This document shows, piece after piece, positions 715 to 43,552 of a stretch of DNA of 64,000 bases. How positions within the stretch are numbered: the stretch's first letter is position 1; every line of letters starts with the position of its first letter. The notes beneath the pieces are model-generated. The model was not told where the DNA came from. It worked only from the letters and a program-made list of their open reading frames with translations, and searched no databases. Both the position numbers and the translations under genes were made by a program. The stretch comes from Selaginella moellendorffii (taxonomy: Eukaryota; Plantae; Lycopodiophyta). The DNA is taken from contig NW_003314399.1 of assembly GCF_000143415.4 (NCBI RefSeq), forward strand, positions 1 to 64,000, given 5' to 3'.

Positions 715-805
715 ATTTCTCCAACACTATCGATGTTTATTCTCTATCAATAAAACTTATTATACTTTATATAATTAATACAAATGTGCTTTTTCATTTC
801 ACTTT

Positions 806-5424: not shown

Positions 5425-5690
5425 TGGTGGAGTCCAAGACAGACCCAAGGTGGAATCCAAGATAGAGTTTGAGATGGACCCGAGATAGAGTCCGAGATGG
5501 ACCAAGATGGAGTCCGAGATGGACCAATATGGAGTCTGAGATGGACCCAAGATAGAGTCTGAGGTCAAGGCCAAGATCAAGACCAAGACCGAGACCGGGA
5601 TTGGGACTGAGATTGAGACCGAGTCCGAGTCTAAGTCCAAGCTCGAGTCTGAGCCAAGTCCGAGTCTGAGTCCGAGTTCGAGTCCAAGGG
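5425..5690. repeat. Minisatellite inside the family A LTR (12-bp GAGATGGACCC/GAGATGGAGTCC units followed by 6-bp units)
   Basis: Visible tandem periodicity; the same array occurs inverted at 60300-60615. Confidence 0.85.
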
Positions 5691-6066
5691 TATAAACCCA
5701 AAGCTTTTATCCCTAGGGGGTTTGGTGAGCTCCAAAAGTATAGTAGGGGGAGGACTCCAATGGAGCTAGTTTGGCTAAGAAAAGCTAATGTGACCAAGGA
5801 AAACTATACATATGGTGGGTGATAAAACCACTGAGGAGTCCAAAGCTAAAGTGAACACAAATAAACAAGTGGGGTAACTTGGTGAAGTGTTTAAGAGTTA
5901 ACTTTAGCTCCCCTAAGAGATCGAATGGTTGATGCTCCCAATCCAAGTGTGGGTGGGACTCTCTATTTGGATACTTTGCATGGCTCATCGGAACCTCACT
6001 CTAACAATATAGCTAAACCATCTAAAGGTAGAAGGTGGGGAGAGTACCTACAAGGCTCACATAGGG

Positions 6067-9000: not shown

Positions 9001-9458
9001 ATGTCACATGCCACATGTCCAAAGGACAGTGGTGTGGAACCCAAGTTTCAGAGCCTTAGCCACTGAACAAAAGAACGGTGCCAAACTCCTAAACATGAAG
9101 CCAAGGAGCAATGGCACTAGAGCATGGAATGACTCCCAAGCATACAGCTCAAAGAGCAAAGGAACATGAGCGCAGAGCGATTTAGAACAGTCCTAAAGCA
9201 TCCAACATCCCAATGCCAGAACCAATATGTAAAATGGAGCCAAATAGAGTTTGGCACTATTTCAGCAAACTAGTGGCCTAATAGAAGGATATGGGTACTC
9301 CACCAACTAACATAGTATGGAACTTAAGCTTAGACCTAAGCCGGATGCAGAACAAATACAAGCATGCAAGTGGGAGCTAGACTATGCCTTAGGTTGGTCA
9401 AGCATACCTAATCTACCTACTATCCCTACTATATATTTGAAATTTAAAACCCCCCACA
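6067..9458. mobile_element. Nested family B LTR-element fragments
   Basis: Left-end motif TGTCG(C/T)GAATGTGACTTC at 6067 and 8171. Minus-strand LTR 7502-7830 has a poly-G PPT at 7831-7850. Minus-strand LTR 8900-9458 has a degenerate tRNA-iMet PBS (TGGTATTAGAGG) at 8886-8897. Confidence 0.7.
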
Positions 9459-9749
9459 GCTAGTGTGATAAAGATGAATGGGCATGACCTTAGTGTAACG
9501 AACTGATATGTCAGTGATACCTTTAGGTGTTGGTCATGGGATTGGACATGTGAAGCACTTGGACCAAATGCAAAGGTTGAGTGGCATGGATGCCATTCTC
9601 GGGGCTAGCAAACCCCAAGTCCAGAATAGAACTTATGGAGGTTGTAAGTGAGACTCCTCCAAGTGATTGGAGATGTGGTTAAGTGACTAAAGTAGAATGG
9701 AAAATTTAGTTGCTTACACAAGTCCAACTTGAGTTTTCTCCTAGCCTCC

Positions 9750-12480
9750 CAATATGGACACAACACTGTATGCTCCACTAGAAAGCACGAGAATTGGCCA
9801 TATTTTATTTCTACAGCTTCGAAAATCCTTTTTAACTTGTCTATGATGTCCCTATTTAGTTGAAGATGCCTGTATTTAAAAAACAAGCTATGTTATCCAC
9901 TAAAAAATGACAAAACTAAATCTTAACATTTTTCCAAGTACAAGTGTCTTGTAATCTCTACGATAGCGTAGGCATTTGGATCATGTGAGTTCTCCACCAC
10001 AGTGTCAATACCCCCATCATAGAAGAGAGCTTTATAGTCAACCTCCACAATACCTGCTTGGCCAAGAATGCATTGCCACTCCTGCCAATACAACATTGCA
10101 TTCTTATTGAGAATCTAACATAGAAAAGAGCTCCCCATAAGCCATTTCAATTGAGGGGCTTTTGCTATTATCTCCACCATGTCCTCGTCCTCTACATCTC
10201 CCATTCCATACCACCCAAGGACTTTGGTCTTCAACCATGTTACCATAGCTATCATATTGTCATCCTAAGATTTGAAGGCAAATTACTCTTGTTGCACGCT
10301 TGATAGCACCAATCTCCCCTACTTACAACAATTGAAATCTCACATTTTCTTGTGAGGCTATCTGGACTTCTTGTATGTACTGCTCACACACTCGCGGCTA
10401 ACTGTCTTGCATACATTCAAACCTACATGCACAATTGTTAGTAAGATGTCAACAAAACACATGAAAAGCTTACTTTGGTACATCTCCAACCTCTAGGAGA
10501 TCTATTAAACATGTAGGTGGTTGCATGTCACTCCCATCACAAATTGGAACTTGGTGTGATAAATCTTCCTTCATTCGGTTGTATTCACTGTCAAATATCA
10601 TAAGCAATCGATCTATGGAGAAGTGTTAGGGATGGAGGCAATAGAAAACAACACTTCTTACCTGAACTAGACATTGGAACAAATGGTGGGAGTTCTGGTA
10701 CATCTTTTATTTCTTTTAGTTTTTCATCTTTTGCATTAACTCTGCCGGCATGAACAACCACCTCTTCATTGCATTGTTGCTGTCGAATATCTAACAAACT
10801 AATATTTTCTTCTTGTAGGATTTGATTGACAGCATTGCTTGGTGCTAGAGATGGTATCCCAACACTTGTAAATGCATCTGTAAGAAATAAATGACACCAT
10901 CAATATAATGATAAAATTCTACAAGAAAAAAGAAATATACCATTGGTATTGTTCTCTTGCTGCCAATAGGTATATGCCCATTTTTAGTAGTGAAGCAAGT
11001 GTTTGTGCATCAAGTATTGACTTATGTCGTACAAGTAGATGACCAAAGATAGTTTTTGTTGCTTTTGTTAGTCATTGCATTCCAAAAGCATAGCTTCAAA
11101 AAGCTAAAAAGCTCTCTCCAAACTTGAGAGTCTCAACATACACCGATGTTCCTTGCATCTTGCGAGACTTCTTCACAAAGGCACCAAGCGGTGTAAATTG
11201 ATCTATTGGTAGATTGTGTGGAGGACGTTGGAGCATGTCACGAATAGCATATTGAGCTGTCCCTGGAACAAAAGCATTTTTCCTAGTATGTACTGCCCCA
11301 TTCCAAACACTCTAGTAGCTTGAACTCAATATCCATGATCTCTGTAATCTTTACACAAAGTTCCTTGAGCCAGCTATAGATATGCTCATACCATGCAATC
11401 TAAATAGCAATATACTTGGAGCACGACATTGTCATCAATGACTAAGGTACTCCTTCATTAAAAGAGCCTCCACACCTCAACAGTTCTAGGGTGCCAAAGA
11501 CTGAAGGTTGTTTGCTGCACGTTGTTGAACACTAGCCATAATAGGTGATACAGTCTGCATGGAGATATTTTAGCTATGAAAAGCATCAAAAAAATAAACC
11601 TTACTGATGGCTCAAGTGGCAATGCACAAGCTGCCACCTCTCAATAGCGATCTGTCATTGGGCCATTGCAAGATGTTGAGGACCCCATCGAGAGAGTGTA
11701 GTGCCTGAGGCTTCTAGAAAATCTAATTGCTGACCATTGTCTAGATGCCAATGTGGCAAATGCATTGAGTTGTGACTAGGAAATACAATCAGAGAGTGAG
11801 TATTGCAAATAGGAAAAACAAAAAGCTAACCACTCTTATGCATCCCTCTGGATGTTAGAGCCAACTGTGTTAGTGTGTGCTCGGTGGTGTTGTGTGGCCT
11901 TGAAGAATAAGATTGTCTAGGAGTATAATGCATGTGTTGGCACTCAATTGTGGGATTTGAGCTGCAACAAGTTATGTATGTTGTTGCCCGCATTGATCAT
12001 GTTGTTGCCCGCAAGAATCTTGTTAGAAGAAGGATGGGAATGGGACATAGATCACATATGGGCGAGAGTGTTCTCTGTGATTGTTCTCTTGGCTTGCTCA
12101 TGTGCTGTAGGCATGATAGGAACTGAACCAGACAGAGTGCTACTCACATTAGATAGCCACAGAAGATTGAGTGCCTACTATGAATCCACTAGAGGATCCT
12201 TTCTCCGGGTTTCCCCACTTCTTGTTGTTTTTAGCCCACTCACCTGGAAAAAAAGAAGATATGGTTCAGATGGGACAAAGATCGCTTTAGCTTTACCATG
12301 CTGTAGTGCTGCCTGATCGATCGCTAGAACACCCGCAAGAAATGGATGATGAAGTTTGCTGCCTCTGAAGCTTGTGATAGCGGGAGAACACAAAATTGAG
12401 GCAAAACTGTAATCATGCCAAGTTTCAAATCCAATATTAATAAATTGATATCTCACACTGTCCAAAGAAATTAATTGTTT
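9750..12480 (-). pseudogene. Degraded multi-exon gene of unknown identity, possibly from a DNA transposon
   Basis: Minus-strand protein-like stretches with stops (e.g. ILNKNAMLYWQEWQCILGQAGIVEVDYKALFYDGG; FVPGTAQYAIRDMLQRPP) separated by short GT-AG intron-like segments. AT-rich flank at 12600-12860. Confidence 0.35.
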
Positions 12481-12869
12481 GTGTCTTGCACCAAACGGTG
12501 ACCCTAACCCTAAAATGGAAAATAGCTATAACCTTATACTCATCATCGACCTAAAAGTTCTATGGAACTTATGGTTGAATTTACACTTGAATGGAGGTTC
12601 TATGGCTCTCAGATAGTAGAATAAGAATTTTAAAAATACATTAAACCAAAATTAATGGTTTTTAATTAAAATATAATTAAAAGGGAGCTAGATATTATTA
12701 TAATTAAAATAAAATCAGAATTGCCCACTTTATTATCATTAAATAAATAAAGAAATCATAAATATTATTTATAATAATAAACAAAAAACTATAAACTAGG
12801 CACTATTGTGTTATTATATAGTTGAAATAAAGTAAAATCATACTTTAATTTAAATATTTCTGGCCACAA

Positions 12870-13090
12870 TAAGCTAGTATACATTTGGCTTAGCAAAGCT
12901 AGAACATACTTGGAGGGTAAAGAGGTTTGTTATGAACTTGGATGAATGTCTTGGATGGTGCTTCCTTCAATAGTGGCTGTCACTTTAAGCGAATGGTCAT
13001 GATATAGCTTAGAAAGCTTTACTGCAGTCACTATTGAAGCATTAAACTCTCAAATCTTTGTTATAGCACTAAACGCTTGCTCAAACCGCA
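12870..13090 (+). pseudogene. Decayed PPR gene fragment
   Basis: Translates in part to IFVIALNACS, resembling the PLS-PPR motif TFVxxLxACS; heavily disrupted. Confidence 0.3.
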
Positions 13091-13201
13091 TGAGAAAGGA
13101 AGCTAGATATGAGTTTGGTGATGGAGGAGAACTTGTCAAGGTGAATTTACAACATAAACATTTGACACAAACCTTGTCCTTGCAGCCTCCTAATGCAATA
13201 C

Positions 13202-13748
13202 TGTAGTGCACGTGGATTTTACCTTTTATCCTATAGTGATTTATTATAGGATAACACTACAAAACGAAACCTAAACCCTCCATATGCCATGTGTTATATA
13301 CCAGATGCTACATGTCACATGTCCAAAGGACAGTGATATGCAACCCAAGTTTCAAGGCCTTGGGCCATTGAGCGAAAGTACGGAGCCAAACTCCTAAATA
13401 TGGAACCAAAGAGCAACGAAACCAAACCATGGAGCAACTCCCAAGCATATAGCCCAAGGAACAAAAGCACAAAGTAACTTGGAATAACCTTAAAGAATTT
13501 AACATCTTAATGCCAAGACCAGCATGCAAAACGGAGCCAAATGGAGTTTGGCACTATTTTAGCATATTAATGGCCTAATACAAAAATATAAGTACTTCAT
13601 CAACTAACATGATATGGAACTTGGGCTTAGACCTAAGCCAAACGCAGAGCAAAGATAAGCACGCAAATAAGAATTAAACTATGCTTCAGGTTAATCAATC
13701 ATGTTTGACGTACCTACTATCCCTACTATACATTTAGAACCCCCCACA
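13202..13748 (-). mobile_element. Solo family B LTR (~550 bp)
   Basis: TGTAG...CCCCCACA termini; homologous to 8900-9458 and to the reverse complement of 51067-51603. No TSD recognised. Confidence 0.75.
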
Positions 13749-14088
13749 CACAAATTGCCACTTTTGGCATTGGTGATAAAACCTCTAACACACAAATGCA
13801 TTGTCATAGTGAAGGTTAAAGTATACAAAGTGGACTAAATAGCTAATAACATACACTCTGACAAACATGGATGGTGAGGATACTGTTTGAAAGACTTATC
13901 ATGACCTCCAAAGTGATCTTTGCACAGATGATTGGGATGTGAAATATAAATATTTCACAACTAAAGTCACAATTGTACTAACTTATTAAACTTAATGTAT
14001 AACATTAAATTTAATTATTCTAATAGAATAAACATAAGCTAAAAACAATTCGTAGATTTAAGTGCTTTTTTGTTTTGTGATCGTCTAA

Positions 14089-24582: not shown

Positions 24583-27129
24583 ATGGAGAAGGAGAGGAGG
24601 GATAGGCGCCATAGGGTGGAGGAGGACGATCGCTGGCACCATGACGAGAAGCGCGAGCGGCGTCACCACAGGGACGTGGATCGGGAGGAGGATGATCATC
24701 GCCGGCGCCACAAATCTTCTTCTTCGAGGTATGACAAGCAGGAGGATGATAGGCGGCATCACAAATCCAAGGAGGAGAGGCACGACCGAGGTCACAAGTC
24801 TTCCAAGGAGGAGAAGGAGAAAACGAGGTCGGAGAAGCGCGGCAGGGAGCAAGATGATGATTTGAAGAAGCGTAGCAGGGATCAGGAAGATGGATCTAAG
24901 GTGGAGAAGCGGAGCAGGGATCAGGAGGATGAATCAAGGAAGGACGCGAAGCGCAAGCGCGATTTGGAGAAGGAGACGGCCGATAAGTCGGTGAGTAAGC
25001 GGAGTCGTAGCGAATTTGCTGAAGAAGAGAAAGCTTCCAATGTAGAGATGAATGGACAAACACCAGCACAACCAGTGGTGGCCTTAACTCCGGCTCCAAC
25101 TCCGACACCGGCTCCATTTTCATCTCCAGCTCCAGCTCCTGTTCCTGTTCCTACCCCTGTTCCAGCTCCAGCAGCAGCTCCAGCGGCTGTTCCACAGACT
25201 GCCCCTGTTGCTCCAGAACCGTCTCCAGCACCGGAACCAGAGGTGGCACCAGTTGCTGGTGATGCATCGGCCATAGCGAAGGCCAAGGCGAGAATGAGGC
25301 AGCTTCGCAAGGAGCTCAACGAGAAGCTGAAAAAGTTGCCACTGGTAAGTGAAGTGGAAGTTTGTTATTTCTTTCGTTTGAGTTCCTTTTTCTCTTCTCT
25401 TGTTCCTAGTTGGAGCAGCTGGCAAACGAAAATGATAGCGCGAACACTATAACCCCAGATTCTGTGGTGCCTTCCGGAACAGTGGACGTTGTTGCTAATG
25501 CCGCAAACATAGCGAGTTACAAGCGTGCTCAGGAATGCGTAGCTCGCCTCGGCTTCCAACAGCCGCCTGGTTCCATGGCACTTCACGTACCGGGTGTTCC
25601 ATCGGCTGGGCCAAAAGTTGTAAAGCACCCCGTTCTTCGCTTGGACAAGCAAGGAAGAGAGATTGACGAGCACGGTGTCGTTGTGGATAACCGGAAGTCA
25701 AACATCAGCACACTCAAGGTGAGTTGGTTGTTTTGGGGTGCGGTCTGATCTTTCTACGGTTTGTTATATGTACTTAGGTGAACATCAACAAACAAAAGAA
25801 GGATGCTTTCCAGATTTTACATCCAGAATTGGAGGAGGATCCAATAAATAATCCTCATTTTGATGCGGACATGGGAATGGACAGAACAAAGCTTGTACGT
25901 CAAAGGAGAAACTCCTTTCAGTTCGTGGAAGAGGGAAGATGGACGAAAAAGGCGGAAATCTTTCGACTTAATGTAAGGACTCTGATTTTTTTTCTTCTAC
26001 TAGTCACTCATAACTTGTGTTTAGAATCGTTTTGGGGCTGCTAAAGCCCGCGAGATAAGGTCGAAGCAGGCGGCCCTTGCAAAGGCCAAAGCAGAAGGGG
26101 ACATTAACCCAAATCTTATAGAAGTTACGGAGAGGATATTCAAGGATGACAAACAGCACCAAGACCCGATTCCTCATGTGGAGTGGTGGTAAGTTTTCTT
26201 GAGTTAAGCACAAAGTAAAATCTGACATGAAGTTTTCCTACAGGGATTTCGCTGTTCTACCTCCTCAGACACAGAGTTACGACGAGGTGATCGACGGAGC
26301 TGAGGTGAAGTTCAAGAAAGAGAAGATCAATATCTACGTTGAGCACCCCGTACCGATCGAACCCCCAGCAGAGCCAGCGCCTCCACCACCACAGCCACTC
26401 AAGCTAACGAAAAAGGAGCAGAAGAAAATGCGGACCCAGCGTCGTCTAGCCAGGGAAAAAGAAAGGCAAGAGCTGATCAGGCAGGGAAAGATCGAACCTC
26501 CAAAAGCAAAGGTGAAGATGTCCAACCTCATGAGCGTGCTGGGAGCCGAGGCAACCCAGGACCCGACGAGGATGGAACACGAGATCAGGACTGCCGCGGC
26601 CGAGAGAGAGCGCGCTCACACGGACAGAAACCTCGCCAGGAAGCTCACTCCAGCCGAGAGACGCGAGAAGAAGGAAAAGAGGCTCTTTGACGACCAGGGG
26701 ACGCTGGAAACCATAGTCGCGGTGTTCCGGGTGAGCGACATCTCCCATCCCCAGACTCGGTTTAAGGTGGACATCAACGCCCAGGAGAACAGGCTCACAG
26801 GTTGCGCGATCATCACCGACGGCATGACGGTGGTGATCGTCGAGGGTGGCGCAAAGTCGATCAAGCGATACACCAAGCTGATGCTCCGGAGGATCAACTG
26901 GTCCGCGAAAGAAGAAGGCAGCGGTGGAAACGAGCAAGGGGACGAGGAGGATGGAAACGAGGAGAAGGAGAACAAGTGCGTCCAGGTGTGGCAGGGAAGC
27001 GTAGCTCGGCCAGCGTTTGACAGGTTCTTCTTCCAAAAGTTCCACACCGCCGGGGCCGCGAGGAAGTACTTGTCCGACGCTGGAGTTGGGCATTACTGGG
27101 ACAGCGCGCTGCATTACAAGGAGGAGTAG
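24583..27129 (+). CDS. PRP3: U4/U6 snRNP protein Prp3 (RDM16-like), multi-exon
   Basis: R/D/H-rich N-terminus, then PRP3 motifs [54 protein letters not shown] and VIVEGG. Confidence 0.95.
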
Positions 27130-27450
27130 ATAAAGAAGAAGATCGCGATGATCCATTGCGCTGCATTACAAGGGGGAGTAGAAAAGAAGATCGCGAGCGA
27201 TGCAAAGAAGGATGATGGTCGAGTGGTGATCGAAGTTTTGCTACTGCTACGAGCAAGATGGTGAGTGGTCGAGTTTCTTGCTGAAGGATCTGGTTTTAGA
27301 ATTCTTTCGTGTTTCTTCCAGCGCTCGATCGAGGTAGAAAGCTGCGAAATGCTAAAGCTTTGGTCAAATAAAAGAGGAGGGTTTGGTTTAATTGGTTTAA
27401 AAACAAGTATATGATTGGAGGATCACGGGAGGAATAGGGAGGAGAGAGCG

Positions 27451-29183
27451 ATGGCGGCGAATCACGCGCCATTGTCGCCGCTCAGCTTCCTCTATAGATC
27501 CGCGGCAGTGTTTGGGGACAGGACATCGCTGATTCACGGCGCCTCATCCTTCACTTGGTCGCAGACTCTGGATCGATGCCGTCGTCTCGCGTCCGCAATC
27601 TCTCTCCGGTTCGGCGTCAATCCTGGCGCTGTGGTATGCGAAATTCCAGTGCTCTCGATCGAAATTGGCCGATTGATCCATCGAAATATCGTGTTCTTGG
27701 TTGTCATTTCTTGTTCTTCCAGGTCTCCGTCGTGGCCCCCAACGTCGCCGCGATCTATGAGATGCACTTCGGCGTTCCCATGGCCGGGGCTATCCTCAAC
27801 ACGATCAACTTCCGGCTGGACGCGCGCACAATCGCGCTGCTGCTGGATCACGCCCAGAGCCGCGCGGTCTTTGTGGACTCGGAGTTCTTCCCTCTCGTCA
27901 CGCAAGCTCTCCAGCTCCTGGCCGAATCGTCCAAGCCTCTCCCCCAGCTCGTCCTAGTCAAAGATAAGTCCTATACTTCTCAAGCAGCTCACAGCTATGG
28001 TGGAATTCTAGAGTACGAGGAGTTGCTCGAGAATTCCAGCCCGGATTTTCCTCTCGTCCTTCCCGACGATGAAGAACAGTCCATCGCCTTGAACTACACG
28101 TCCGGTACCACTTCCAGGCCCAAGGGCGTTCTCTACACTCACCGTGGAGCGTATCTCAACTCCATAGCCAGCATTCTCCTGTGGGAGGTGGGACCTTTTC
28201 CAGTCTACCTCTGGACGCTCCCAATGTTTCACTGCAATGGCTGGTGCTTTACGTGGGCGATCGCGGCCCAGGGTGGAACCAACATTTGTCTACGCAACGT
28301 CACTGCCAAAGCCACCTTTGATGCCATAGCCGAGAGCTCCGTCACTCACCTCTCTGGAGCTCCCACGGTCCTCAACATGATCGCCAGCTCCATCCCCAGC
28401 GAGAGGAGAGATCTTCCGGACAAGGTGGCGGTGATCGTCGGGGGCGCTCCTCCGCCAGCGGCGATCCTCTCGAGCATGGAGGAGCTCGGCTTCGTCGTGA
28501 CACACGCTTACGGCCTCACGGAGACTTACGGGCCGGCTTTAGTCTGCGCGTGGCGGCCTCACTGGAACTCTTTTCCTCTCGAGGAGCGAGCCAAGCTCAA
28601 GAGCCGGCAAGGCGTCGTCCACCTCGGGCTCCACCAGGCGGACGTCAAGGATCCGGCAACCATGGAGTCGGTTGCCCGAGATGGCCGGACGCTGGGAGAA
28701 GTGATGGTCCGCGGAAGCACTGTGATGAAAGGCTACCACAGAGACGATGAAGCGACGAGGGCGGCGTTCCAGGGAGGATGGTTCCATACCGGTGACTTGG
28801 GAGTGATCCATCCGGATGGTTACATCCAGCTGCGCGACCGATCCAAGGATATCATCATCTCGGGTGGCGAGAACATCAGTAGCATCGAGGTGGAGTCGGT
28901 TCTCTACGGCCATCCGGAAGTTCTTGAGGCGGCTGTGGTCGCTCGGCCCGACGATTTCTGGGGGGAGACGCCCTGTGCATTCGTGACGCTCAAGGACATT
29001 GGTGGTGCGACCAGCGCTCGAGGGATCATCGATTACTGCCGGGCTCGGATGCCCCACTTCATGGTTCCTCGATCCGTGGTGTTTGGAGAGCTTCCAAAGA
29101 CGTCCACTGGTAAGGTCCAAAAGTTCTTGCTCCGAGACAGGGCCAGAGCCATGGGAAGCCTCAAAGCTCCCAGCAAGCTTTGA
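27451..29183 (+). CDS. Peroxisomal acyl-activating enzyme (AAE clade I, short-chain acid-CoA ligase), copy 1; intron 27634-27722
   Basis: AMP-binding YTSGTTSRPKG, YGLTE, GWFHTGD, DRSKDIIISGGENI, LPKTSTGK; C-terminal PTS1 SKL. Confidence 0.95.
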
Positions 29184-29516
29184 TACTAATTATGTTTAGT
29201 AAGATGGTAGTAATATAAGAAAGCATTGATCAAGCAGAATTCTAATATATCACAAACTGAGTTGTTTCAAATGTGCCACAATGGCACGTACCATCAATAA
29301 CAGGTCCTTTGCAGCAATCGTGCAAAAAGCTCCTTTTAAGCACTTGTGAATAGACTAACATACTGAGATATACTTATTAGCATCTTAAATCATATGCTGC
29401 ATGAATACAACAGTGAACGAATAACGTTGTTACAGGATTGAATAAGATTTCCTGCTTTCTCGTAATTCATGGTCAAGCGACAAGGTTGGTCCAAAACTTC
29501 TCTCCTCCAGTATTTG

Positions 29517-30513
29517 TTATTGAAACTGCGAGGAGACTTTGTCGAGAAGAGGAACTCTTTTAACTGCGAGAGAGATTTTGTTAAACCAGTTATGAAAAAA
29601 AGAGAAGCTGTGATACTTACCATCACCTGTAGCAAGCCATGGTTACTGGGGTGGAAATAATCTTCTCAGCAACTTTGCCAATATCATCCAAAGTCAGCTC
29701 TCGAACGGTGTCGATAAACTCCTTTGCGGGTTTCCTGTCACCAAATAAAATGGTCACAAATAGATTCACAAACCATTTAGCTCTCTAACCTGCAACCATA
29801 GGTGAGAATTTGCCGACCAATGTCCTCATTCACGACCACCTACAAAGAAAACATTTTGTTTATCTATGGAAAGACAAAAAGTTTTTTTTTTTTGGAAGAA
29901 AATATTGTTCTACTTCACGAACCCGAGACTCGAGATTAATCAAAACAAGTGAAACGGTTGCATTCTGTGTGCGCTCCAATTCAATCTCGTCGACTGGAAT
30001 GGAAAAGAGCGATCAAAGACAAGCTAGAATTGAAAAGTTTCAAAGTAGCTCATCTCCTATGAGATCTACAAGCTCGCCTACAAACTTGTGCTCCTAGAAG
30101 AAGATCACAGGAACACGCGTTTAGCAACTAGAAACTATTGCGAGAGAGTGCTACTCACAGACGATGCGTGAATTCCAAACAAGCCGGAGTCATTGTACAC
30201 GGAAGTAAAAGCAGTAAAATTTTCCACCTTGGGATGAACAGCCAGAACGCGAGTATCTGGAAGAGTTATTGCAAAAATTAAGTAAGAAGAAAACCAAAAC
30301 CACGAACGATACTTACACAATCTAGAATGGACACCCTTGCCCTGGCCTCCGGAAGAAAACGAACCACCTCCTCCAAGAAGCGACTAAAGGACGTAGACAT
30401 TCCTACAGTAAACTTGATAGAGAAGGGAAGCTTACTTGTAACACGGTCGCCGTGACAGCATCGCATTCGTTTCTCCAGCCACCAGGGATTTCAAGCGCGA
30501 TGGAAACCGATGT
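29517..30513 (-). pseudogene. 3' half of MPP-alpha, truncated duplicate
   Basis: Reverse complement of 33456-34476. It lacks the 5' exons, has a deletion at ~30045 (missing ACCTTCTCCAGGTTCTGCCACAGAAATA) and an indel near 29627. Confidence 0.9.
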
Positions 30514-31159
30514 TCTTGACTTTCTACTGCATATTTATTGAACTCAAACCTTTAGTAATTCATTGTAGGTGTCAATAAATCTGAAAAGATCACAAAATCA
30601 GCATATGCATCTAAAAACAAAGTCCTCTGCTTAATATCTAAGCTCTACAAGCTTATTGATAAAGTGTAGAAAATCTTCATAAAAAAGTTGGTTTGGATTG
30701 GCTGATTACCATGAAATATGGCCAAGTTTTGTCATAAAAACTCAATTTTCATTTTGTCCTCTTAAAGGTTGTGAAACAACTTTCCCAAATTACTTCCTGG
30801 TTGACATATTAATAGCCATCCCAGACACAAAATTGATTTACACCTAACCCAGGCCATAGAATATTCTTGAAAAATTCCCCTGATTTACTTGAAGTGCATA
30901 GAAACAGGAGGTTCTCTCCCACGGTTTGATGCAAAGGATGCCCATGGGAGATTGTTATGGTGGATGATGCCAAGGTGCCACAATGACATTGTGACATAAA
31001 GGTTTCCTCTCAATTTCAAGCAAAAACTTTAAAGTGGGTTTCTTACAGTTGGCTCAGACGCGCATGGCATACAGGACATAGATGCGGAATAGTAGAAGAC
31101 ACAAGATGAGAGCTTCACATTATCAGCCATGGCGACCATAAAATCCTTCTTCTTCTTCT

Positions 31160-32020
31160 CCCAGTGGCCAGCATGTTGCCTGAAATCTCCGACGGAAGTT
31201 ATAAGCAGCTACTTGGGCTTTTTTTTGTCGATGGTGTTTGCTTTTGCTGGAGAAAGAGTAACGAGTGTTAGCGGATTTTTCTTTTCTTGTGGGAAAATAC
31301 CTTGATGAGCTCTTCCTGCTGTTCTGGAAATGCTGGCGCTCTTCTCGCTGGGAAGCAGACGAACGCTCTGCAAGAAATCAAACAGCAAAAGATGAAATAA
31401 CCAGAAACGAAAGTCCAAGTTTTTACCTGGAACAGAGCGATCTAAAAGTCAAGCCATTTGCTTAGCTGCAGAAAGCTCTTCAAACTTAAGACGCTATCAT
31501 CTCTTGTGGTGTCAAGGAAACTAGCCCTCGGGTTCCGAAAGCGAGTTTCTGGTTGGGCCTTCCTCTTCAACTTATCCGGCCAAGGATCATCACTAACGTG
31601 GAGTTCTTCAGCCTCACTCGCCACCTTCCTGCCCTTTCTGGAAGAAGCATCGGAATGAGAACAGCTCCATCCTTGAAGCCACATATTTGTTGTTGTTGAG
31701 CGACTCTATATGTTGCTGCTGCTGCTGCTGCTGCTGCTTCTCTTTCTCCCTCCTCTCACCGCAAGACAATCAAGCAAACTGGGAAGAACTCGATACCCGA
31801 GTTGTGTGGAGGAACGTAGCGAAAGCTGCGAGCGACAGCAGTAGCGTTCCTGTGCTGTGCTAATCTTCTCACGGCCAAGCTGACGCTCCCACTGGCAGCA
31901 CGGCACCAAGATCTTAGATCGTCGAATCTTGGTCGATCCAGTCGATGGAAGCTGCTTGAATTCCCGGGGCAATCTAAACAAGGAGTCGTGGCCATCTGGA
32001 TCCAAAGTCTTCGATGTGGA
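31160..32020 (-). pseudogene. Internally deleted LETM1 duplicate
   Basis: Matches 38724-40950 (AVRRLAQHRNAT...SFRYVPPHNSG, CAG tract, VASE/VSDDP, last exons and introns). The ATG and most central exons are deleted. Confidence 0.88.
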
Positions 32021-32034
32021 GCTGCTGCCCAGGC

Positions 32035-32139
32035 TTACTTGCAATAGCGGTCGGCTTTCTTCCCTGGATCCCTGGATTTCTTCTTCGTCTCGACCGCTTG
32101 CCCAAGAGCCCTAAAATTTAGGGTCCTTAAACCTTGAAT
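32035..32139 (-). pseudogene. Collapsed remnant of the FRG1-like gene and its promoter
   Basis: The reverse complement reads ATTCAAGG..TTAA..CCCTAAATTTTAGGG (cf. 38250-38290), GAAGAAGAAATCC (cf. ~38395) and GAAGAAAGCCGACCGCTATTGCAAGTAA, identical to the FRG1-like stop region. Confidence 0.85.
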
Positions 32140-32156
32140 AAACCCTAGCGAGGGGG

Positions 32157-34476
32157 ATGAAGAAAGCGAGGCGGCTGGGCGAGGTGAGATCTCTCATTGG
32201 GAGCTTGAATGCGGCGATTGAATCAGTTCTTTCAGGCCGCTCTCGATACTTGGAGATCGATCTCGACTTCCAGAGTCTCCAAGCAAGCTTTAGCAGCCAG
32301 AACAGCAGCCGCAGAGGAGCCCAAAGGAAAGGGGTTGCTCTCGTGGTTCCAGCGCAAGAAAAAGAAGGGCCTGCTATCAGATCTTCCCACGCTCTACGAG
32401 CCTCTTCCAGGCGTCAAACTCCCTCTCGATCTGGACGATGGCTTTGCTCTGCCAGTGGAGACTAAAATCACCAAACTCGCCAATGGATTGACGGTGGCTT
32501 CCGAGAACACTATGGTGAGAAGCTCTTGCCATTCTCGATGGTTTTCTACGCTCAAAATCGTTTTTTTTTGTGAGAGTTCTTACTCTATCTCTCGTGCAGG
32601 GACCGACAGCAACCATTGGAGTTTATGTTGATTCCGGCAGCTCTCACGAGACTCCTTTCAACTCCGGCGTGAGCCATATTCTGGAACGCATGGCTTTCAA
32701 GAGCACGCGAAACCGGACGCACTTGAGGCTTGTCCGCGAAGCGGAAGCCATCGGCGGTAATGTTCTTGCGTCTGCTTCGCGAGAGCAAATGTCTTATACG
32801 GGTGATGTGATAAGGAGCTTTGTTCCCGAGATTGTGGAGCTTCTTGCCGATAGCATCCGGAACCCGGCTTTCCACGACTGGGAAATCAAAGAACAGGTCC
32901 CTTTCTCGCTGGTTGATTGATCATCTTTGAGAACTTTCTTTTTCTTTTGGATCCACAGGTGGATATCTTGAGAGAAGAGATTCAAGAGATGGCAAAGGAT
33001 CCTCAAGCGATGCTTCTGGAGGCTCTCCATCCTGCCGGTTATAAGGGCCCTCTTGGCAAAGCACTGGTGACAAGCGAGTCCTCGTTGGATAGAATCGACT
33101 CTCGCGCTCTTCACGAGTTTGTAGCTGTAAGTTCTTCCTCTCTTCTTTTTGTTTTCCTTGTTCTTGTGGTTTTCTAATACCATGGATCTTTCTAGGCAAA
33201 CTATACAGCTTCACGGATGGTTTTCGCTGGCTCTGGCGTCGAACACGACTATTTCCTCTCGCTGGTTAAACCGTTGTTCGAGGACATGCCTCTGGTGGCT
33301 CCTCCAGAGCCTGTGAAGTCCGAGTATGTTGGTGGCGAGTGGCGGCTTCAAGGCGAAAGTGATGTAAGAGTTTTTCTTCTTCCTCTTCGTTTTTTTCTTG
33401 TTCTTTCTGTGTGGAAGTGTAGACAGATTTAATACTTTCATTCCTTAAGCAGACTACATCGGTTTCCATCGCGTTTGAAATCCCTGGTGGCTGGAGAAAC
33501 GAACGCGATGCTGTCATGGCGACCGTGTTACAAGTAAGCTTCCCTTCTCTATCAAGTTTACTGTAAGAATGTCTGCGTCCTTTAGTCGCTTCTTGGAGGA
33601 GGTGGTTCGTTTTCTTCCGGAGGCCCGGGCAAGGGTGTCCATTCTAGATTGTGTAAGTACGGTTCGTGGTTTTGGTTTTTTTCTTACTTGGATTTTCCAA
33701 TAACTCTTCCAGATACTCGCGTTCTGGCTGTTCATCCCAAGGTGGAAAATTTTACTGCTTTTACTTCCGTGTACAATGACACCGGCTTGTTTGGAATTCA
33801 CGCATCGTCTGTGAGTAGCACCCTCTCGCAATAGTTTCTAGTTGCTAAACGCGTGTTCCTGTGATCTTCTTCTAGGAGCACAAGTTTGTAGGCGAGCTTG
33901 TAGATCTCATAGGAGATGAGCTTATTTCTGTGGCAGAACCTGGAGAAGGTACTTTGAAACTTTTCTCTTCTCGCTTGTCTGTGATCGCTCTTTTCCATTC
34001 CAGTCGACGAGATTGAATTGGAGCGCGCAAAGAATGCAACCGTTTCACTTGTTTTGATGAATCTCGAGTCTCGGGTTCGTGAAGTAGAACAATATTTTCT
34101 TCCAAAAATTTTTTTTTTTTGTCTTTCCATAGATAAACAAAATGTTTTTTGTAGGTGGTCGTGAATGAGGACATTGGTCGGCAAATTCTCACCTATGGTT
34201 GCAGGTTAGAGAGCTAAATGGTTTGTGAATCTATTTGTGACCATTTTATTTGGTGACAGGAAACCCGCAAAGGAGTTTATCGACACCGTTCGTGAGCTGA
34301 CTTTGGATGATATTCGCAAAGTTGCTGAGAAGATTATTTCCACCCCAGTAACCATGGCTTGCTACGGCGATGGTAAGTATCACAACTTCTCTTTTTTTCA
34401 TAACCTGTTTAACAAAATCTCTCTCGCAGTTAAAAGAGTTCCTCTTCTCGACAAAGTCTCCTCGCAGTTTCAATAA
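32157..34476 (+). CDS. MPPA: Mitochondrial processing peptidase alpha subunit (M16 family), ~11 exons
   Basis: [29 protein letters not shown], glycine-rich loop [21 protein letters not shown] and [13 protein letters not shown]. Confidence 0.95.
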
Positions 34477-34713
34477 CAAATACTGGAGGAGAGAAGTTTT
34501 GAACCAACCTTGTCGCTTGACCATGAATTACGAGAAAGCAGGAAATCTTATTCAATCCTGTAACAACGTTATTCGTTCACTGTTGATTCATGCAGAATAT
34601 GCTTATAAGATGCTAATAAGCAAAGGACATGTTATTGCGTGCCATTGTGGCATATTTGAAACAATATCAGAATTCTGCTTGATGCTTTCTTATAATACAA
34701 CCATCTATTAGTA

Positions 34714-36454
34714 TCAAAGCTTGCTGGGAGCTCTGAGGCTTCCCATGGCTCTGGCCCTGTCCCGGAGCAAGAACTTTTGGACCTTACCAGTGGAAGTCTT
34801 TGGAAGCGCTCCAAACACCACAGATCGAGGATTCATGAAGTGGGGCAGCCGAGCCCGGCAGTAATCGATGATCTCTCGAGCGCTGGTCGCACCACCACTC
34901 CTCTTGAGCGTCACGAACGCGCAGGGCGTCTCCCCCCAGAAATCGTCGGGCCGAGCGACCACGGCCGCCTCGAGAACTTCCGGATGGCCGTAGAGAACCG
35001 ACTCCACCTCGATGCTACTGATGTTCTCGCCACCCGAGATGATGATATCCTTGGATCGGTCGCGCAGCTGGATGTAACCATCCGGATGGATCACTCCCAA
35101 GTCACCGGTATGGAACCATCCTCCCTGGAACGCCGCCCTCGTCGCTTCATCGTCTCTGTGGTAGCCTTTCATCACAGTGCTTCCGCGGACCATCACTTCT
35201 CCCAGCGTCCGGCCATCTCGGGCAACCGACTCCATGGTTGCCGGATCCTTGACGTCGGCCTGGTGGAGCCCGAGGTGGACGACGCCTTGCCGGCTCTTGA
35301 GCTTGGCTCGCTCCTCGAGAGGAAAAGAGTTCCAGTGAGGCCGCCACGCGCAGAATAGCGCCGGCCCGTAAGTCTCCGTGAGGCCGTAAGAGTGTGTTAC
35401 GACGAAGCCGAGCTCCTCCATGCTCGAGAGAATCGCCGGTGGCGGAGGAGCGCCCCCGACTCTCACCGCCACCTTGTCCGGAAGATCTCTCCTCTCGCTG
35501 GGGATGGAGCTGGCGATCATGTTGAGGACCGTGGGAGCTCCAGAGAGGTGAGTGACGGAGCTCTCGGCTATGGCGTCAAAGGTGGCCTTGGAAGTGACGT
35601 TGCGTAGACAAATGTTGGTTCCACCTTGGGCCGCGATCGCCCACGTAAAACACCAGCCATTGCAGTGGAACATTGGGAGCGTCCAGAGGTAGACTGGAAA
35701 AGGTCCCATCTCCCACAGGAGAATGCTGGCTATGGAGTTGAGATACGCTCCACGGTGAGTGTAGAGAACACCCTTGGGCCTGGAGGTGGTACCGGACGTG
35801 TAGTTCAAGGCGATGGATTGTTCTTCATCATCGGGAAAGACGAGAGGAAAATCCTGGCTGGAATTCTCGAGCAACTCCTCGTACTCTAGAATTCCACCAT
35901 AGCTGTGAGCTACTTGAGAAGTATAGGACTTATCTTTGATAAGGACGAGCTGGGGGAGAGGCTTGGACGATTCGGCCAGGAGCTGGAGAGCTTGCGTGAC
36001 GAGAGGGAAGAACTCCGAGTCCACAAAGACCGCGCGGCTCTGGGCGTGATCCAGCAGCAGCGCGATTGTGCGCGCGTCCAGCCGGAAGTTGATCGTGTTG
36101 AGGATCGCCCCGACCATGGGAACGCCGAAGTGCATCTCATAGATCGCGGCGACGTTGGGCGCCACGACGGAGACCTGGAAGAACGCAAGAACAAGAAATG
36201 ACAACCAAGAACACGATATTTCGATGGATCGATCGGCCAATTTCGATCGAGAGCACTGGAATCTCGCATACCACAGCGCCAGGATTGACGCCGAGCCGGA
36301 GTGAGATTGCGGATGCGAGACGGCGGCATCGATCCAGAGTTTGCGACCAAGTGAAGCATGAGGCGCCGTGAATCAGCGATGTTTTGTCCCCAAACACTGC
36401 CGCGGATCTATAGAGGAAGCTGAGCGGTGACAATGGCGCGTGATTTGCCGCCAT
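34714..36454 (-). CDS. Peroxisomal acyl-activating enzyme, copy 2 (possible upstream ATG at 36469)
   Basis: Intact ORF with the same motifs, intron position and SKL terminus as copy 1. Confidence 0.95.
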
Positions 36455-38297
36455 CGCTCTCTCCTCCATCTCCTCTCCTCCAATCATATTCACATATGGT
36501 TGTCAATCACAAACATAAAATTGATAAATATCCCTTTACCTTTTTTATGTTTTTTGAGTTGGTCTCTCTATTTCTATCATTAAGATTTCCTCCTTTTCAT
36601 CATAGTCATCATCATTAATGTCATATTTCTCAATATCCCACTCCTTTGCCATCTATTCTAATATATATCAATGAAATGAGTAAGGAGTATAACTTTAGGG
36701 CAATACTACCTAAAACATAGAGAAGGAATAATTTTATGATAGAAAGTTAAAGATTGTTTAAGAGTGCAATATTGAGAGTCTTTGCGAGTTAGAGACTAAG
36801 TTGAGCATAATTAATAATAAGCATCTACAATCAATTGAATTGATAGATAAAGCATATAAATTAGTTTTTAGAAGTGGGAAACTGGAGTATAAAAAAGTAC
36901 CTACTTTTGCTTAATTTTGTTTACAATAGTGCTTAATAATTAATTATTAGCATTGCCATTCATAGCAATGTATAGTTATAAATCAAGGCTTATTGTGAGT
37001 TTGAGTTTAGTTTTTGTTTGAGTGCCTTTTATTTGTGATTTTCTCAAGATTATTCAAATAATCTTGAGCAGGCAAGCTCAAAAACAAGATAAAAGGTTAA
37101 CTAATGAATATCATTATCATCAAAAGTATAAAATTGATGATAAAATTTTCTTTAAGCTATGTAATGTAAAATGGTCTCTAAAAGGAGGTAATAGTGTGAA
37201 GTTGTCTCTACAATATTATGGACTTTGGACAATTTTACAATATGTGGGGGATCTTACTTACACTTTGGATTTATTAGTTAGTTTGAAAATTCATCAAACA
37301 TTCATATCACCAAGTTTAAAACATATATACACTCTAGTGATGTTATGGATCAATTCATAATCCAAGTCCTAAAGATTAATGCTGAAAAGATTAGTCCAAT
37401 AAGAATTTTCACTCAAAAGTTAGTAAAGGCATATAACAAAACAATTTAGGAATTTTTGGTTCAATAGAATAGTTATTCATGGATGAGGTCACATGAAATC
37501 AAGGATGACATGAAAAAAGTGTTTCTGAGTTTCCATTATGGCTTTCCGAAGAAGGGGAAAATTAAGTTTTTTAACCGTATTATTATATAATTTGAGTTAT
37601 TGCTTTATTCTTATTCTTTTATTTCCATAACTGTATTATCATATAAATTTTTTTTTCTTTCATTGTTGTTTGCTACAATGTTAATATTGCTATTTACACA
37701 TCTTTTCTCTATGGCTGTATTACTTTGAACTCCCTTCATTTAAGTATTACCTTGGACTCTCTTCATCTAAAGCTAGTTTAGCTTTTCAAATACTACTATT
37801 AATGGATGAAAGGAGAACAACACGACCAACTGAAAAATTCTAAGAATATTCTATGAGCGTTGGCCTTTGTTTGTTTCACCCACAGCCATGAAATAAGAAA
37901 CTAGCAAACAACACAACAAAATCGTGTATCACACCAACATTGTCCTCTGTGGCGTGTCGGATCGATTGATTGGCCACTCATCCTACAAGGAATATCATAT
38001 TTCCAAGTATATTCTCCATGTGTGGTAGTGTTAAAGCCTGTTAAAACATCAACTTCAGTGATATTTTTGAGTAGGACAATACATTTTGGGCTATCACACA
38101 CCAAGCCAGATAGAGGATCTGTACAAGTAGTGTATAATAGGATATTATAGAATCTTTCGTTACATATTTTATTTCAACATTTAGTTTCACATTTACGTGG
38201 TTTATAACATACAGCCACTGGCAAGTTATGCCGAAGTAGATGTCTAAAGATTCAAGGGTTAAAGAATCTAGAGCCCTAAATTTTAGGGTTCTTAGGG

Positions 38298-38681
38298 ATG
38301 GCATCGTCCGCCTACGAGAGCGTCAAGGGAGGTAAGCTCTCGCTCAAGCTCGGCGCCAATGCGGCCGACAGGCCGATCGCGAAGAAGAGGAAGAAGAAGA
38401 AATCCAAGGCGCAGGAGGAGGAAGAATCCGGCGCAGGGAAGACACTGGAGGAATCCGGGGGCTATGAGATCGACACAGGGATAGGGCATGCGCCGGATGG
38501 GAAGAAGAGTAAGAAATACGAGGAGCTCTTCCCTGTGGAGACGAAGAGATTCGGGTATGAGATCCCGAAATCTTCTGCTGCCGCGGCCGCGGCTGTCGCG
38601 GCGTCTGCGAAGGAATCGGCATCGCGAGAGGCGGCTCTGGACGAGCGCGTGAAGAAGAAAGCCGACCGCTATTGCAAGTAA
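38298..38681 (+). CDS. Small basic nuclear protein, FRG1-like (N- and C-terminal motifs only)
   Basis: 127-aa intronless ORF: YESVKGGKLSLK plus a Lys-rich NLS at the N-terminus, and LDERVKKKADRYCK at the C-terminus, resembling the FRG1 terminus KADRYCK as I recall it. Confidence 0.7.
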   Translation: MASSAYESVKGGKLSLKLGANAADRPIAKKRKKKKSKAQEEEESGAGKTLEESGGYEIDTGIGHAPDGKKSKKYEELFPVETKRFGYEIPKSSAAAAAAVAASAKESASREAALDERVKKKADRYCK

Positions 38682-38902
38682 GAAAATACCTTGTCAGCAG
38701 CTTAGCTAGTGTGACATGGCCGTGCCACATCGGAGACTTTGGATCCAGATGGTCACGACTCCTTGTTTAGTTTGCTCCGGGAATTCAAGCAGCCATTTGG
38801 CCTTCCATCTTCCCGGGACGGCTGGACCAAGATTTGGATTTTTACTGCTCGACGATCTAATGGGAGGCAGCTTTGCTTTGGTGCCGTGCTGCTGGATTTC
38901 TC

Positions 38903-40915
38903 ATGGAAGCCCGTGTTGCTGGGAGCCTCAGCTTTGCCGTGAGAAGATTAGCACAGCACAGGAACGCTACTGTTGTCAGCTTTCGCTACGTCCCTCCACA
39001 CAACTCCGGATATCGAGCTCTTCCCAGTTTGCTCGATTGTCTTGTGTCTTCTAATGGTGGAAGGGATAAGCAGCAGCAGCAGCAGCAGCAGCAACATGGA
39101 TATAGAGTCGAGCTTCGTAGAGTAGACCAGGGAAGATTTCGTGTCCCTCATGGCTTCAAGGATGGAGCTGCTGCTCGGCTCCCGCCATTGTTATTTTTCT
39201 CCTCCGATGCTTCTTCCAGAAATGATAGGAAGGTGGCGAGTGAGGAAGAGAAAGAAAAGGCGAGGAAGTGGCGCAAGAGGCTTGTGGCATCAGTGGAAGA
39301 ACTCCAAGTTAGTGACGATCCTTTGCCGGATAAGTTGGAGAAGAAGACCCTTCTGCAAAAGACATGGAATCTGCTTGTGAGGATCGGTTCGGGACTGAGA
39401 AACATGGCTTCGATGAGCAGGCAAGGTTTTTTGTTAGTGCTAGTTCCTTGATTTTCTTAATAGTTTGCTTACTCCAGAGAGGACTGGGCAAAGTGGCTCA
39501 AGAAAGCAAAGACGACTGTGTGGCTGGAGTTGCAACATTATTGGGTTGGAAGTAAGTTGCTATGGGCGGAGATCCGGATTTCCACCAGGCTTCTCGTCCA
39601 GCTCTCGGGTGGTAAGAAGCTAAGCCGAAGAGAACAGCTCCAACTAAGGCGGACAGCAGGAGACATTGCTCGTTTAGTCCCGTTCATAATTATCGTCATC
39701 GTGCCCTTCATGGAGTTCTTACTGCCAGTTCTTCTCAAGGTCTTCCCCAACATGCTACCATCAACATTCCAGGACAAGTTGAAGCAGGAGGTCCGTTTTA
39801 TATCTTTTGCGCCAACGTACAATCAGTCTAGTTCTGTTTTTTCAGGCGGAGTTGACAAAACGATTGGAAACACGGCTTCGCCACGCGAAAGGCTTAAAGA
39901 ATGCGTTACTGGAAATGGTGGACGAGCTCAAATCCAAACGGGGAGAAGATATTCAGAAAACCGCCAAAAATCTTGACGACTTTATGACCAAGGTCCTCGC
40001 GAATAATATTTTTTGTCATCTGGTTTTATGGAACATGCTTTGTCTCTGGCAGGTCCGCACTGGACAAAACATAAAAAACGCGGACATACTGGGATTTGCA
40101 AAGCTCTTCAATGACGAACTGACTTTGGACAACATCAGCAGGTCTGAGCCGTGATTTTCCTGCACCAAAGGTTTAAACGTTTTCCTTGTAAACGCAGGCC
40201 GCGATTGATAAGCATGTGTAAATACATGGGCTTACGACCATTTGGGACGGATGCGTATCTGCGCTACACTCTTCGCAAAAAACTGGCATGGTAAGAGCTA
40301 GCAGTAGCTTCAAGCTTACGCAGTGTAGCTCCTTACTTCCAGGATCAAATCCGATGACCGGCTAATCAGAATGGAAGGAATAGACTCACTTTCGGAACCC
40401 GAGCTTCGAGCTGCTTGCCGGGAACGAGGAATGCTTGTTTCTTTGACACCACAAGAGATGAAAGCACAGGTAAAGTCTCTATTTTTCTTAAGAAAACTGC
40501 GTCTTAAGTTTGAAGAGAGCTTTCTGCAGCTAAGCAACTGGCTTGATTTGTCACTAGATCACTCAGTACCATCCTCGCTCCTCATCTTGTCCAGGTAAAA
40601 ACTTTACCTTTCGTTTCCGGCTGTGTCATTGTTTTTTCTTGCAGGGCGTTCGTCCCGGACAAACTAAAACCGGCAGAAGCTGTCCAAGCGACACTGTCAT
40701 CGCTTCCAGACGAAGTGGTGGACTCGGTCGGTGTCACAGTGCTGCCCAGCGAGGACACGCTTGAGGAGCGCCGGCGCAAACTGGAATTTCTAAAGCAGCA
40801 GGAAGAGCTCATCAAGGTATTTTCCCACAAGAACATCTCTGCAAAACCTCTACCACCGCTCGCTTTCCAGCAAGAGCAAACGCCACCAGCAAGAACGCCT
40901 GAGAAGCCCAAGTAG
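38903..40915 (+). CDS. LETM1: LETM1/Mdm38-like mitochondrial inner-membrane protein, ~9 exons
   Basis: LQHYWVGSKLLWAEIRIS, RLVPFIIIVIVPFMEFLLPVLLKVFPNMLPSTF, FNDELTLDNISRP, ELRAACRERG and VPSSLLILSR; poly-Q from a CAG repeat in exon 1. Confidence 0.92.
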
Positions 40916-41124
40916 CTGATCCGTCGAGTTTTCAGGCAACTTGATGGCTATTGTTTCAAAACATCCGACTGACTTCTTACACATTTTTGCAGGAAAGTCT
41001 TACTTCAAAGCCAAGGAAGTGATTGAGGTGGTTCTCTCTGAAATTCATAAACAACAAAGAGGAAAAACTATCACGAATCTTGATATCTTACATAAACACC
41101 TCCAAATGTTACAGCTTGCTGCCA

Positions 41125-41694: not shown

Positions 41695-42058
41695 TGTGCC
41701 CGTGAGAACAACACTCACACTGCTCTCGGCGACGCCGAATCAATCGCCATCGCCAGTGCCACAGCGCGCAAGAATCCGTGCTATAATCTTAGCTACATGA
41801 CCAGGGATGGAATCTCAAATCGCCAAACCTTCGATCGTCATCGCCATAGCAGGAGCTCTCCAAGTAATAGTGAAAGAAACCCTAGAGAGGAAGGAGAGAG
41901 AGGGGTTTGGGATCGAACACGCGACGTCCACGTGTACGGTAGGGGTTGGAAGGGATTTGCAATATATTCCTTGCGGAGGGCGAGAGAGAGAGGAGCAAGA
42001 CGCGCGGACGCCTGGCGCTGGCGTCGATCGATCGATGACGCTCACGGGAGGAGCGGCG

Positions 42059-43552
42059 ATGGAGATCGCAATGCCTGCTGTGAGGAATGCGGCTCAGGTG
42101 AACGCTCTAGGCGCTGGAGTGGGAGAAATCTCCTGCTCCACCTCCTCCTTTTGTAGAATGCAGCAGCGCAGGGAGAAATCTCCATCTCTTGCATGGCGTG
42201 GGAGGCGAGCTATAGCCTCCGCGATCGATCTAAGGTCCGATTCGGCTGTGAGCAGCAACGGCGTCGCAGCTGCGACGCTGATCCCAACGCCGACCAAGGA
42301 TCTCAGCAGCGGTGCCAGCGATGATCCACCTTTCGGGATTCTCTACAGTGAGAATTTTACTATACGCTGTTACGAGGTGGGCACGAACAAGAAGGCGTCC
42401 ATCCAGACCATCGCAAATCTTCTCCAGGTATGGAAATTCTTTCCTTTCTTCGCTTGTCAAGAGCTTTTTGAGAATTTTAGGAGGTGGCTTGTAACCAAGT
42501 GAGAACACTTGGATTTTCCACGGATGGATTCGCGACAACTTTATCGATGCGAAAGCATCATCTCATCTGGGTGACTGTTCGCATGCACATCGAAATGGAC
42601 GATTATCCAAACTGGTTGGTAAAACTGCGTGCTTTGTTTTTCTTTTCTGTGACAGAGCTTTTGATCTTACAGGGGTGACGCCGTGCAAGCCCAAACATGG
42701 TTCCAGGAGAATAGAAATGGGACCCGACGCGATTGGCTGTTAAAGGATGTCAATACCGGGTTGACACTCGGTCGAGCTACCAGGTTTGTCTTTTTGCAGT
42801 ATCGATTCTTTGTTATAGCGAAACGGTTTTTCTTTCTTTTTTTTCCCTTTTTGTTGTTGTGCAGCACCTGGGTGATGATGAATCAAGAAACAAGGCGATT
42901 TGCAAGAATAAATGAAGAGATCAGGGGAGAATATCACCAATACGCGTTAGATCCTCCAAGGTCGGGATTCAGCTGTTTATGTCGCAAGCGTGACGCCGTT
43001 CGTATGTTGTTTCTGCATTTTAGATTTTCGTTCCCAGAAGATCATGCCACATACAAGAAGCACCAACTGGCGAAACTGGAAAACGCAGAGCATCATATCA
43101 CCGGGCTCAAGGTAAATCGTGTCTTGTCGTGGTGCTATCTTAAACGTTGCTGCTTTGAGGCTTTAAACTCTCCATAATGCAGCCGAGACGGGCGGATCTC
43201 GACATGAATCAACATGTGAACAACGTGGCGTACATAGGCTGGATGATGGAGGTACTAGAATCACATTTCTCGTGCTCTAGCAGATCTACTAATCCTTACA
43301 AAATCCTAGAGCCTCCCGGCTGACATCGCAAACAGCCACGAGCTCCGCGGGATCATCCTGGAATTCAAGCAGGAGTGCAAGCACGACGACTGCGTGGAAT
43401 CGATGGCAGCTAAATTCTCTCCAGCGGACCAATCCGGCGACGAAGAACACCAGTTTTTGCATCTTCTCAGACTCGATGGCAGCAGCCGAGAGATCAACCG
43501 AGGCTGGACTCACTGGGTGAAAGCCAAAGAAAGTTCACAGCAGGGAGCTTGA
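42059..43552 (+). CDS. FATA: Plastid acyl-ACP thioesterase, FatA-like, multi-exon
   Basis: Transit-peptide-like N-terminus; FTIRCYEVG, IANLLQE, GFSTDGFATT, LIWVT, catalytic DLDMNQHVNN and EFKQEC. Confidence 0.9.

Follow-up and report, generated by a model that had tools for sequence, protein, structure and literature searches.

How does a unit of genes come to lie in both orientations, with one copy nested inside the other? The question is raised by a block of about 13.5 kb in the lycophyte Selaginella moellendorffii. The block lies in the window analysed here, the first 64,000 nucleotides of the forward strand of contig NW_003314399.1 (assembly GCF_000143415.4). Four genes are involved, encoding a peroxisomal acyl-activating enzyme (AAE), MPP-alpha, a small lysine-rich protein and a LETM1-like protein. 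The original prediction for this DNA saw a four-gene unit with an inverted copy of itself sitting inside it, and proposed that reciprocal gene loss had then returned the housekeeping genes to one copy each. Self-BLAST and alignments bear out the topology: an inverted copy of the unit does lie between outer pieces, with the gene order and orientation as claimed. The proposed history fares less well. The same order can arise in one step, by an inversion whose two ends are left behind as inverted duplicates, and on balance we favour such an origin. In this case MPP-alpha would never have been present twice, and the outer piece of it would have been a fragment from the start.

The block is laid out as B x D′ C B′ y D, as follows. 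A repeat search and self-BLAST find inverted repeats at the positions given in the original prediction. The outer left arm, B (27409–30513), contains AAE1 and a 3′ fragment of MPP-alpha. It pairs in inverted orientation with the inner arm, B′ (36489–33456), which contains the MPP-alpha 3′ exons and AAE2; of the 2997 bases aligned between the two, 106 (3.5%) are mismatched. On the right, D (38250–40948) contains the working small gene and the LETM1-like gene. Its counterpart, D′ (31167–32139, reverse strand), is a decayed inverted copy of both genes together with 48 bp of promoter. The self-BLAST and repeat search find this second inverted match in patches (31167–32062 versus 38654–40948), and a global alignment of 31167–32139 with 40948–38250 carries it to 32139/38250, in the promoter upstream of the small gene. 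Overall the match is patchy, and in the well-aligned blocks the divergence is 10.7%. Between D′ and B′ is the core, C (32140–33455, forward strand), a 1.3-kb segment that holds the rest of the MPP promoter and the MPP 5′ exons and is single-copy in the window.

All four segment boundaries are sharp, and only two junctions are novel. Each is occupied by a filler: x (30514–31166; 653 bp, 37% GC) lies between B and D′, and y (36490–38249; 1.76 kb, 30% GC) lies between B′ and D. Neither filler has a match elsewhere in the window, and no target-site or terminal repeats were found with them. Filler y does contain a decayed piece of a Ty3-type integrase, in that the open reading frame at 37022–37360 matches the Pfam family SH3_Tf2-1, the C-terminal piece of such integrases, with an E value of 2.8e-8, exceeding the curated cut-off. 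No long terminal repeats or target-site duplication were found around this piece, which sits in the AT-rich filler separating AAE2 from the small gene.

Two different end segments, each present twice in inverted orientation, thus enclose a middle segment that is single-copy within the window. Brand and colleagues are said to have described, in 2015, a human arrangement with the segment order A C′ B′ A′ C and two junctions. The Selaginella block has the order and the number of junctions so described. Rearrangements of this class are usually explained by replication template switching. The class is named dupINVdup among human structural variants (Collins et al. 2017, PMC5338099). The human examples are recent, extend from kilobases to megabases and come from patients and populations, whereas the present block is small and old, shows gene decay, and has its AAE pair on both haplotype scaffolds. 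A second precedent is found in Drosophila, where 17 of 29 inversions have inverted duplications at their breakpoints, explained by staggered breaks (Ranz et al. 2007, PMC1885836). As in these flies, both breakpoint regions are here duplicated in inverted orientation around the putatively inverted segment, and the duplicates diverge by substitutions and small deletions, with some kept as genes (PMC1885836).

The working MPP-alpha gene (32209–34476, forward strand, by its exon map) spans the C/B′ boundary at 33456. Here and below, exons were searched one by one against the databases, and the AAE and MPP exons were joined only for substitution counts. The gene encodes a Peptidase_M16 domain (E 3.9e-32). 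The closest solved relatives of the product are plant MPP-alpha proteins (E 1e-41 to 8e-42, versus 1e-18 for beta subunits), which identifies it as the alpha subunit. The outer arm contains the last 8 exons only (29517–30513, reverse strand), encoding the C-terminal ~200 of roughly 500 residues, and the break falls inside an exon. This fragment is dead. It has a 25-bp deletion ending exon 30047–30090 and a 1-bp insertion near 29625, and over six ungapped exons all 8 of its coding differences from the inner gene are nonsynonymous. The outer copy had been described as having lost MPP. The outer unit has no C; its breakpoints are sharp, and nothing there looks like the decayed remains of an earlier copy. 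The outer piece was probably truncated at birth and not by later loss. Since C is single-copy, no loss of a second MPP gene is required, and if a single event made the block, MPP was never duplicated whole and its absence from the outer unit is not a loss.

The inner copy also records how MPP-alpha and the small gene were placed relative to each other. The remnant of the small-gene start codon (32100–32098, now CAA) is 108 bp from the MPP ATG, and between them is the 15-nt palindrome CCCTAAATTTTAGGG (32109–32123), in the putative shared promoter of the two genes. A second copy lies at 38274–38288. The sites starting at 32109 and 38274 are the only ones in the window, against a chance expectation of 0.02 matches. 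The halves of the palindrome are telomere-repeat-like, and both copies are unchanged despite their diverged flanks. The proposal that the two genes stood head-to-head around a near-palindrome is thus supported by the inner copy; judging from that arrangement, this was their orientation before the event. The distances need revision. The MPP ATG had been placed at 32157, which is in a different frame; the likely start codon is at 32209, so the promoter remnant ends about 70 bp from it and not 17 bp. The ATG at 32157–32159, 52 bp ahead of the likely start, may belong to a short upstream open reading frame or lie upstream of the transcription start. The two halves of the promoter are now apart: the telo-box AAACCCTA at 32140 remained on the MPP side, and the working small gene retains just 48 bp of the shared sequence.

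The small gene (38298–38681, forward strand) is a single-exon open reading frame of 127 residues, rich in lysine. It is a 98% match to LOC112345550 from the other S. moellendorffii haplotype, and the protein collection holds no exact entry for the copy on this scaffold. The protein belongs to a streptophyte family, with 73 relatives from Chara to the angiosperms, 110–140 residues long and uncharacterised, which share the motif YEELFPVE and a C-terminal KADRYCK; all 17 of the invariant residues are present. One source labels a family member “like AT2G25720”, and a literature search found no paper mentioning AT2G25720. The name FRG1, given to this gene in the original prediction, has to be replaced by AT2G25720-like. 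The fascin-like FRG1 domain (PF06229) gives no hit even at E values up to 10, the protein has only 127 residues, and no FRG1 appears among its solved-structure matches. FRG1 also ends in ADRYCK, and this ending probably misled the earlier reader. No Pfam family reaches threshold for the protein. A signal for FAM32A (PF08555) is below it (14.7 bits versus a cut-off of 22, E 0.056), and FAM32A occurs in 18% of the members of the nearest Atlas cluster.

The neighbouring LETM1-like gene (38903–40915, forward strand) has several exons and an inferred start. Its assignment follows from matches to LETM1_RBD (PF07766), which fall on three successive exons of the outer gene and cover domain positions 1–78, 99–131 and 172–207. 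A polyglutamine-encoding CAG/CTG run is present in exon 1 of both the working copy (39070–39095) and the dead one (31706–31735).

In D′ both genes are ruined, as the original prediction had held for the inner copy. Compared with D, D′ lacks 1754 bp in 25 deletions and has gained 72 bp in 5 insertions. The small-gene copy has lost its start codon and ~320 bp. The LETM1 copy has lost ~1 kb, including the domain exons, and is cut 35 bp past its stop codon. D′ keeps an intron, which identifies it as a genomic copy and rules out a retrocopy. Methylation-type hypermutation was considered as the source of the higher divergence of D′ and rejected, GC-to-AT changes numbering 25 versus 30 in the AT-to-GC direction.

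AAE is the gene that remains double. AAE1 (27451–29183, forward strand) has two exons (27451–27633 and 27723–29183), and AAE2 (34714–36454, reverse strand) is an intact second copy, for which the RefSeq model starts at 36469. Both encode the Pfam domains AMP-binding and AMP-binding_C and end in SKL, as expected of AAE1-like peroxisomal enzymes. AAE1 is a 100% match to EFJ06290/XP_002992588, and AAE2 is a 100% match to XP_024522004. A search with the large AAE exon returns a cluster of six proteins from S. moellendorffii, encoded on a scaffold of 338,253 bp, to which the window belongs, and on one of 3,149,477 bp. We take the published assembly to contain both haplotypes, and the 3.15-Mb scaffold, which encodes XP_024528706 and XP_002967798, carries the other alleles. 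Both AAE paralogues are present on both scaffolds, and all are intact, which agrees with the original statement that AAE alone stays double. Over 486 residues, the alleles differ at 5 and 8 positions (1–1.6%) and the paralogues at 18 (3.7%), and the alleles pair by copy. It follows that the duplication predates the split of the haplotypes.

Aligned with each other, the two AAE genes of the window show 56 differences in 1644 coding bases and 21 in 548 residues (nonsynonymous divergence, dN, 0.020; synonymous divergence, dS, 0.085; dN/dS 0.23). When all four copies from the two haplotypes are compared, the paralogues have 14 fixed residue differences, and polarisation with outgroups places 5 derived changes on AAE1 and 4 on AAE2. 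The dN/dS ratio and the similar numbers of derived changes indicate that both copies are constrained. Of its native upstream sequence AAE2 retains just 42 bp. AAE and MPP-alpha lie tail-to-tail, their stop codons 237 bp (inner, 34477–34713) or 333 bp (outer, 29184–29520) apart. With such short spacing, read-through from AAE1 would give RNA antisense to the MPP 3′ exons.

We propose the following history. The ancestral order would have been PRP3> AAE> <MPP-alpha small-gene> LETM1-like> thioesterase>. One rearrangement would then have flipped the whole AAE-to-LETM1 unit and left a copy of each end behind. The product, B D′ C B′ D, would contain two full AAE coding regions, one full MPP gene plus a fragment dead on arrival, and both the small gene and the LETM1-like gene in duplicate. 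The inner copies of these last two would have decayed through deletions, while purifying selection would have kept both AAE genes. Gene conversion may have kept the 3.1-kb arms partly alike, giving them a younger look than D and D′. The fillers could have been picked up during the event or added afterwards; filler y comes from a transposon. The copies that survive are those with native flanks, the upstream region in the case of AAE1 and the 3′ flank in that of the outer LETM1-like gene.

Several observations weigh against a single event. The duplicated ends, 3.1 and 2.7 kb long, exceed both the inverted core (1.3 kb) and the largest duplicates in the Drosophila series, which reach about 1.9 kb (PMC1885836). 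The unexplained filler held by both junctions also sets the block apart from the Drosophila cases, as does an ancestral state that is inferred and not taken from an outgroup. D and D′, moreover, diverge more than B and B′. Divergence is 10.7% in the good D blocks but 3.5% where B consists of MPP sequence (p = 6e-8), the MPP introns alone reaching 5.6%; exon 1 of the working and dead LETM1 copies differs by 10.2% versus 2.0% for the MPP exons (Fisher p = 7e-7), a comparison that is confounded by unequal constraint. A single event therefore needs a later homogenisation of the arms. The differences between B and B′ are indeed clustered, with a longest identical run of 284 bp (P = 0.003), a raised variance per 100 bp (P = 0.003), and patches that range from 0% to 7%. 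This clustering suggests, but does not prove, gene conversion between the arms, which would make them look younger than their real age. Constraint on the AAE coding sequence could add to the clustering. On the other side of the balance, the most diverged arm patches (7%) and the AAE dS (0.085) approach the 10.7% of D/D′.

The unequal divergence is the natural starting point for a different account, in which two separate inverted duplications took place. The older would have carried a copy of the small gene and of the LETM1-like gene across the block, the source then decaying, and the younger would have copied the MPP 3′ end and AAE in the opposite direction. Divergence in D/D′ is ~2 to 5 times that in B/B′ according to site class, the deletions in D/D′ are far larger, and since the haplotypes split the AAE copies have undergone almost no exchange (1 discordant among 30 variable sites), all of which fits two events. 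We nevertheless regard this account as unlikely, if worth keeping in mind. Each duplication would have to send its inverted copy across the same 1.3-kb core to the opposite flank, mimicking the one-step signature by coincidence, and truncated copies of the small gene and the LETM1-like gene would have to outlive the native ones with their complete flanks. The proximity of the AAE dS to the D/D′ divergence and the clustering of the arm differences also speak for one age. Still less probable is the account given in the original prediction, that a full inverted four-gene copy was inserted in the outer MPP gene (or that a duplication-inverted triplication was followed by deletion), after which complementary losses under dosage constraint locked in the extra AAE. 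It yields the same final topology, D′ was once complete for its coding regions and did decay, and the inner unit is complete in extent. However, it requires an additional deletion of exactly C from the outer copy, there is no sign that a second full MPP ever existed, and the outer fragment ends sharply inside an exon, without fading. Nothing requires dosage constraint either, since the loss of one redundant duplicate is its usual fate.

The argument for lock-in was that neither copy can be deleted whole. It fails because individual genes in this block succumb to point changes and small deletions, as D′ shows. Purifying selection, arm-to-arm gene conversion or both would better explain the extra AAE, as far as the substitution patterns can tell, and selection accounts for its retention. 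Fractionation, that is, reciprocal gene loss, is well known after duplication. The block resembles it in that one of two copies has been lost for both the small gene and the LETM1-like gene. It differs in that the losses are not reciprocal between once-complete units, the MPP piece being most likely incomplete from the start. The original prediction had itself raised the worry that merged haplotypes might have produced the arrangement, and a fold-back chimera would be another artefact of this sort. The presence of both haplotypes in the assembly gives the worry some ground, but we consider an artefact scarcely credible. Both AAE genes are present on each of the two haplotype scaffolds (338 kb and 3.15 Mb), which were assembled independently, the alleles pair by copy, and the paralogues differ more than the alleles. 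The arms differ by 3.5% plus insertions and deletions, and D′ is an old, heavily deleted relic, beyond what any assembler would make.

The arms of the block invite comparison with the palindromes of the human Y chromosome, in which near-identical arms are kept alike by arm-to-arm gene conversion. The Selaginella arms are likewise inverted, contain intact gene copies and show mosaic differences. Unlike the Y palindromes, they are 3.5% diverged, and conversion between them is deduced from clustering in a single sequence pair. It is conceivable, though we would give the idea little credence, that the 3.1-kb arms form a small conversion-maintained palindrome whose 2.9-kb spacer can be flipped by recombination between the arms, in which case haplotypes or accessions might differ in orientation. 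Because MPP-alpha crosses the arm boundary, after such a flip its 5′ exons would be followed by the 3′ exons of the other arm. A palindrome kept by conversion would, if real, also explain why the dead MPP fragment has stayed 97% like the living gene.

The block is bordered on the left by the last exon of PRP3 (U4/U6 snRNP; 26227–27129) and on the right by an acyl-ACP thioesterase gene (41807–42502), and no duplicated piece of either flanking gene was found. Further left, the GC content is ~40% over positions 1–14000 of the window but ~50% or higher across much of the gene-rich part; these first 14 kb are probably rich in transposons. In Diphasiastrum, Ceratopteris and Adiantum, AAE and small-gene relatives are on different chromosomes according to their locus tags, the orthology of these relatives not being established. 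A search for a complete MPP-alpha from outside the seed plants brought up representatives that were either fragments or, by their N-termini, angiosperm-like.

An inversion with duplicated ends is a known kind of rearrangement, and our understanding of genome rearrangement is unchanged by this case. The block would nonetheless be a clean, fully resolved plant example of the kind. It also gives a warning, in that nested inverted copies need not mean stepwise reciprocal gene loss. In S. moellendorffii, such an event can create a retained duplicate, the second AAE gene, split a two-way promoter, and leave dead pieces of genes behind.

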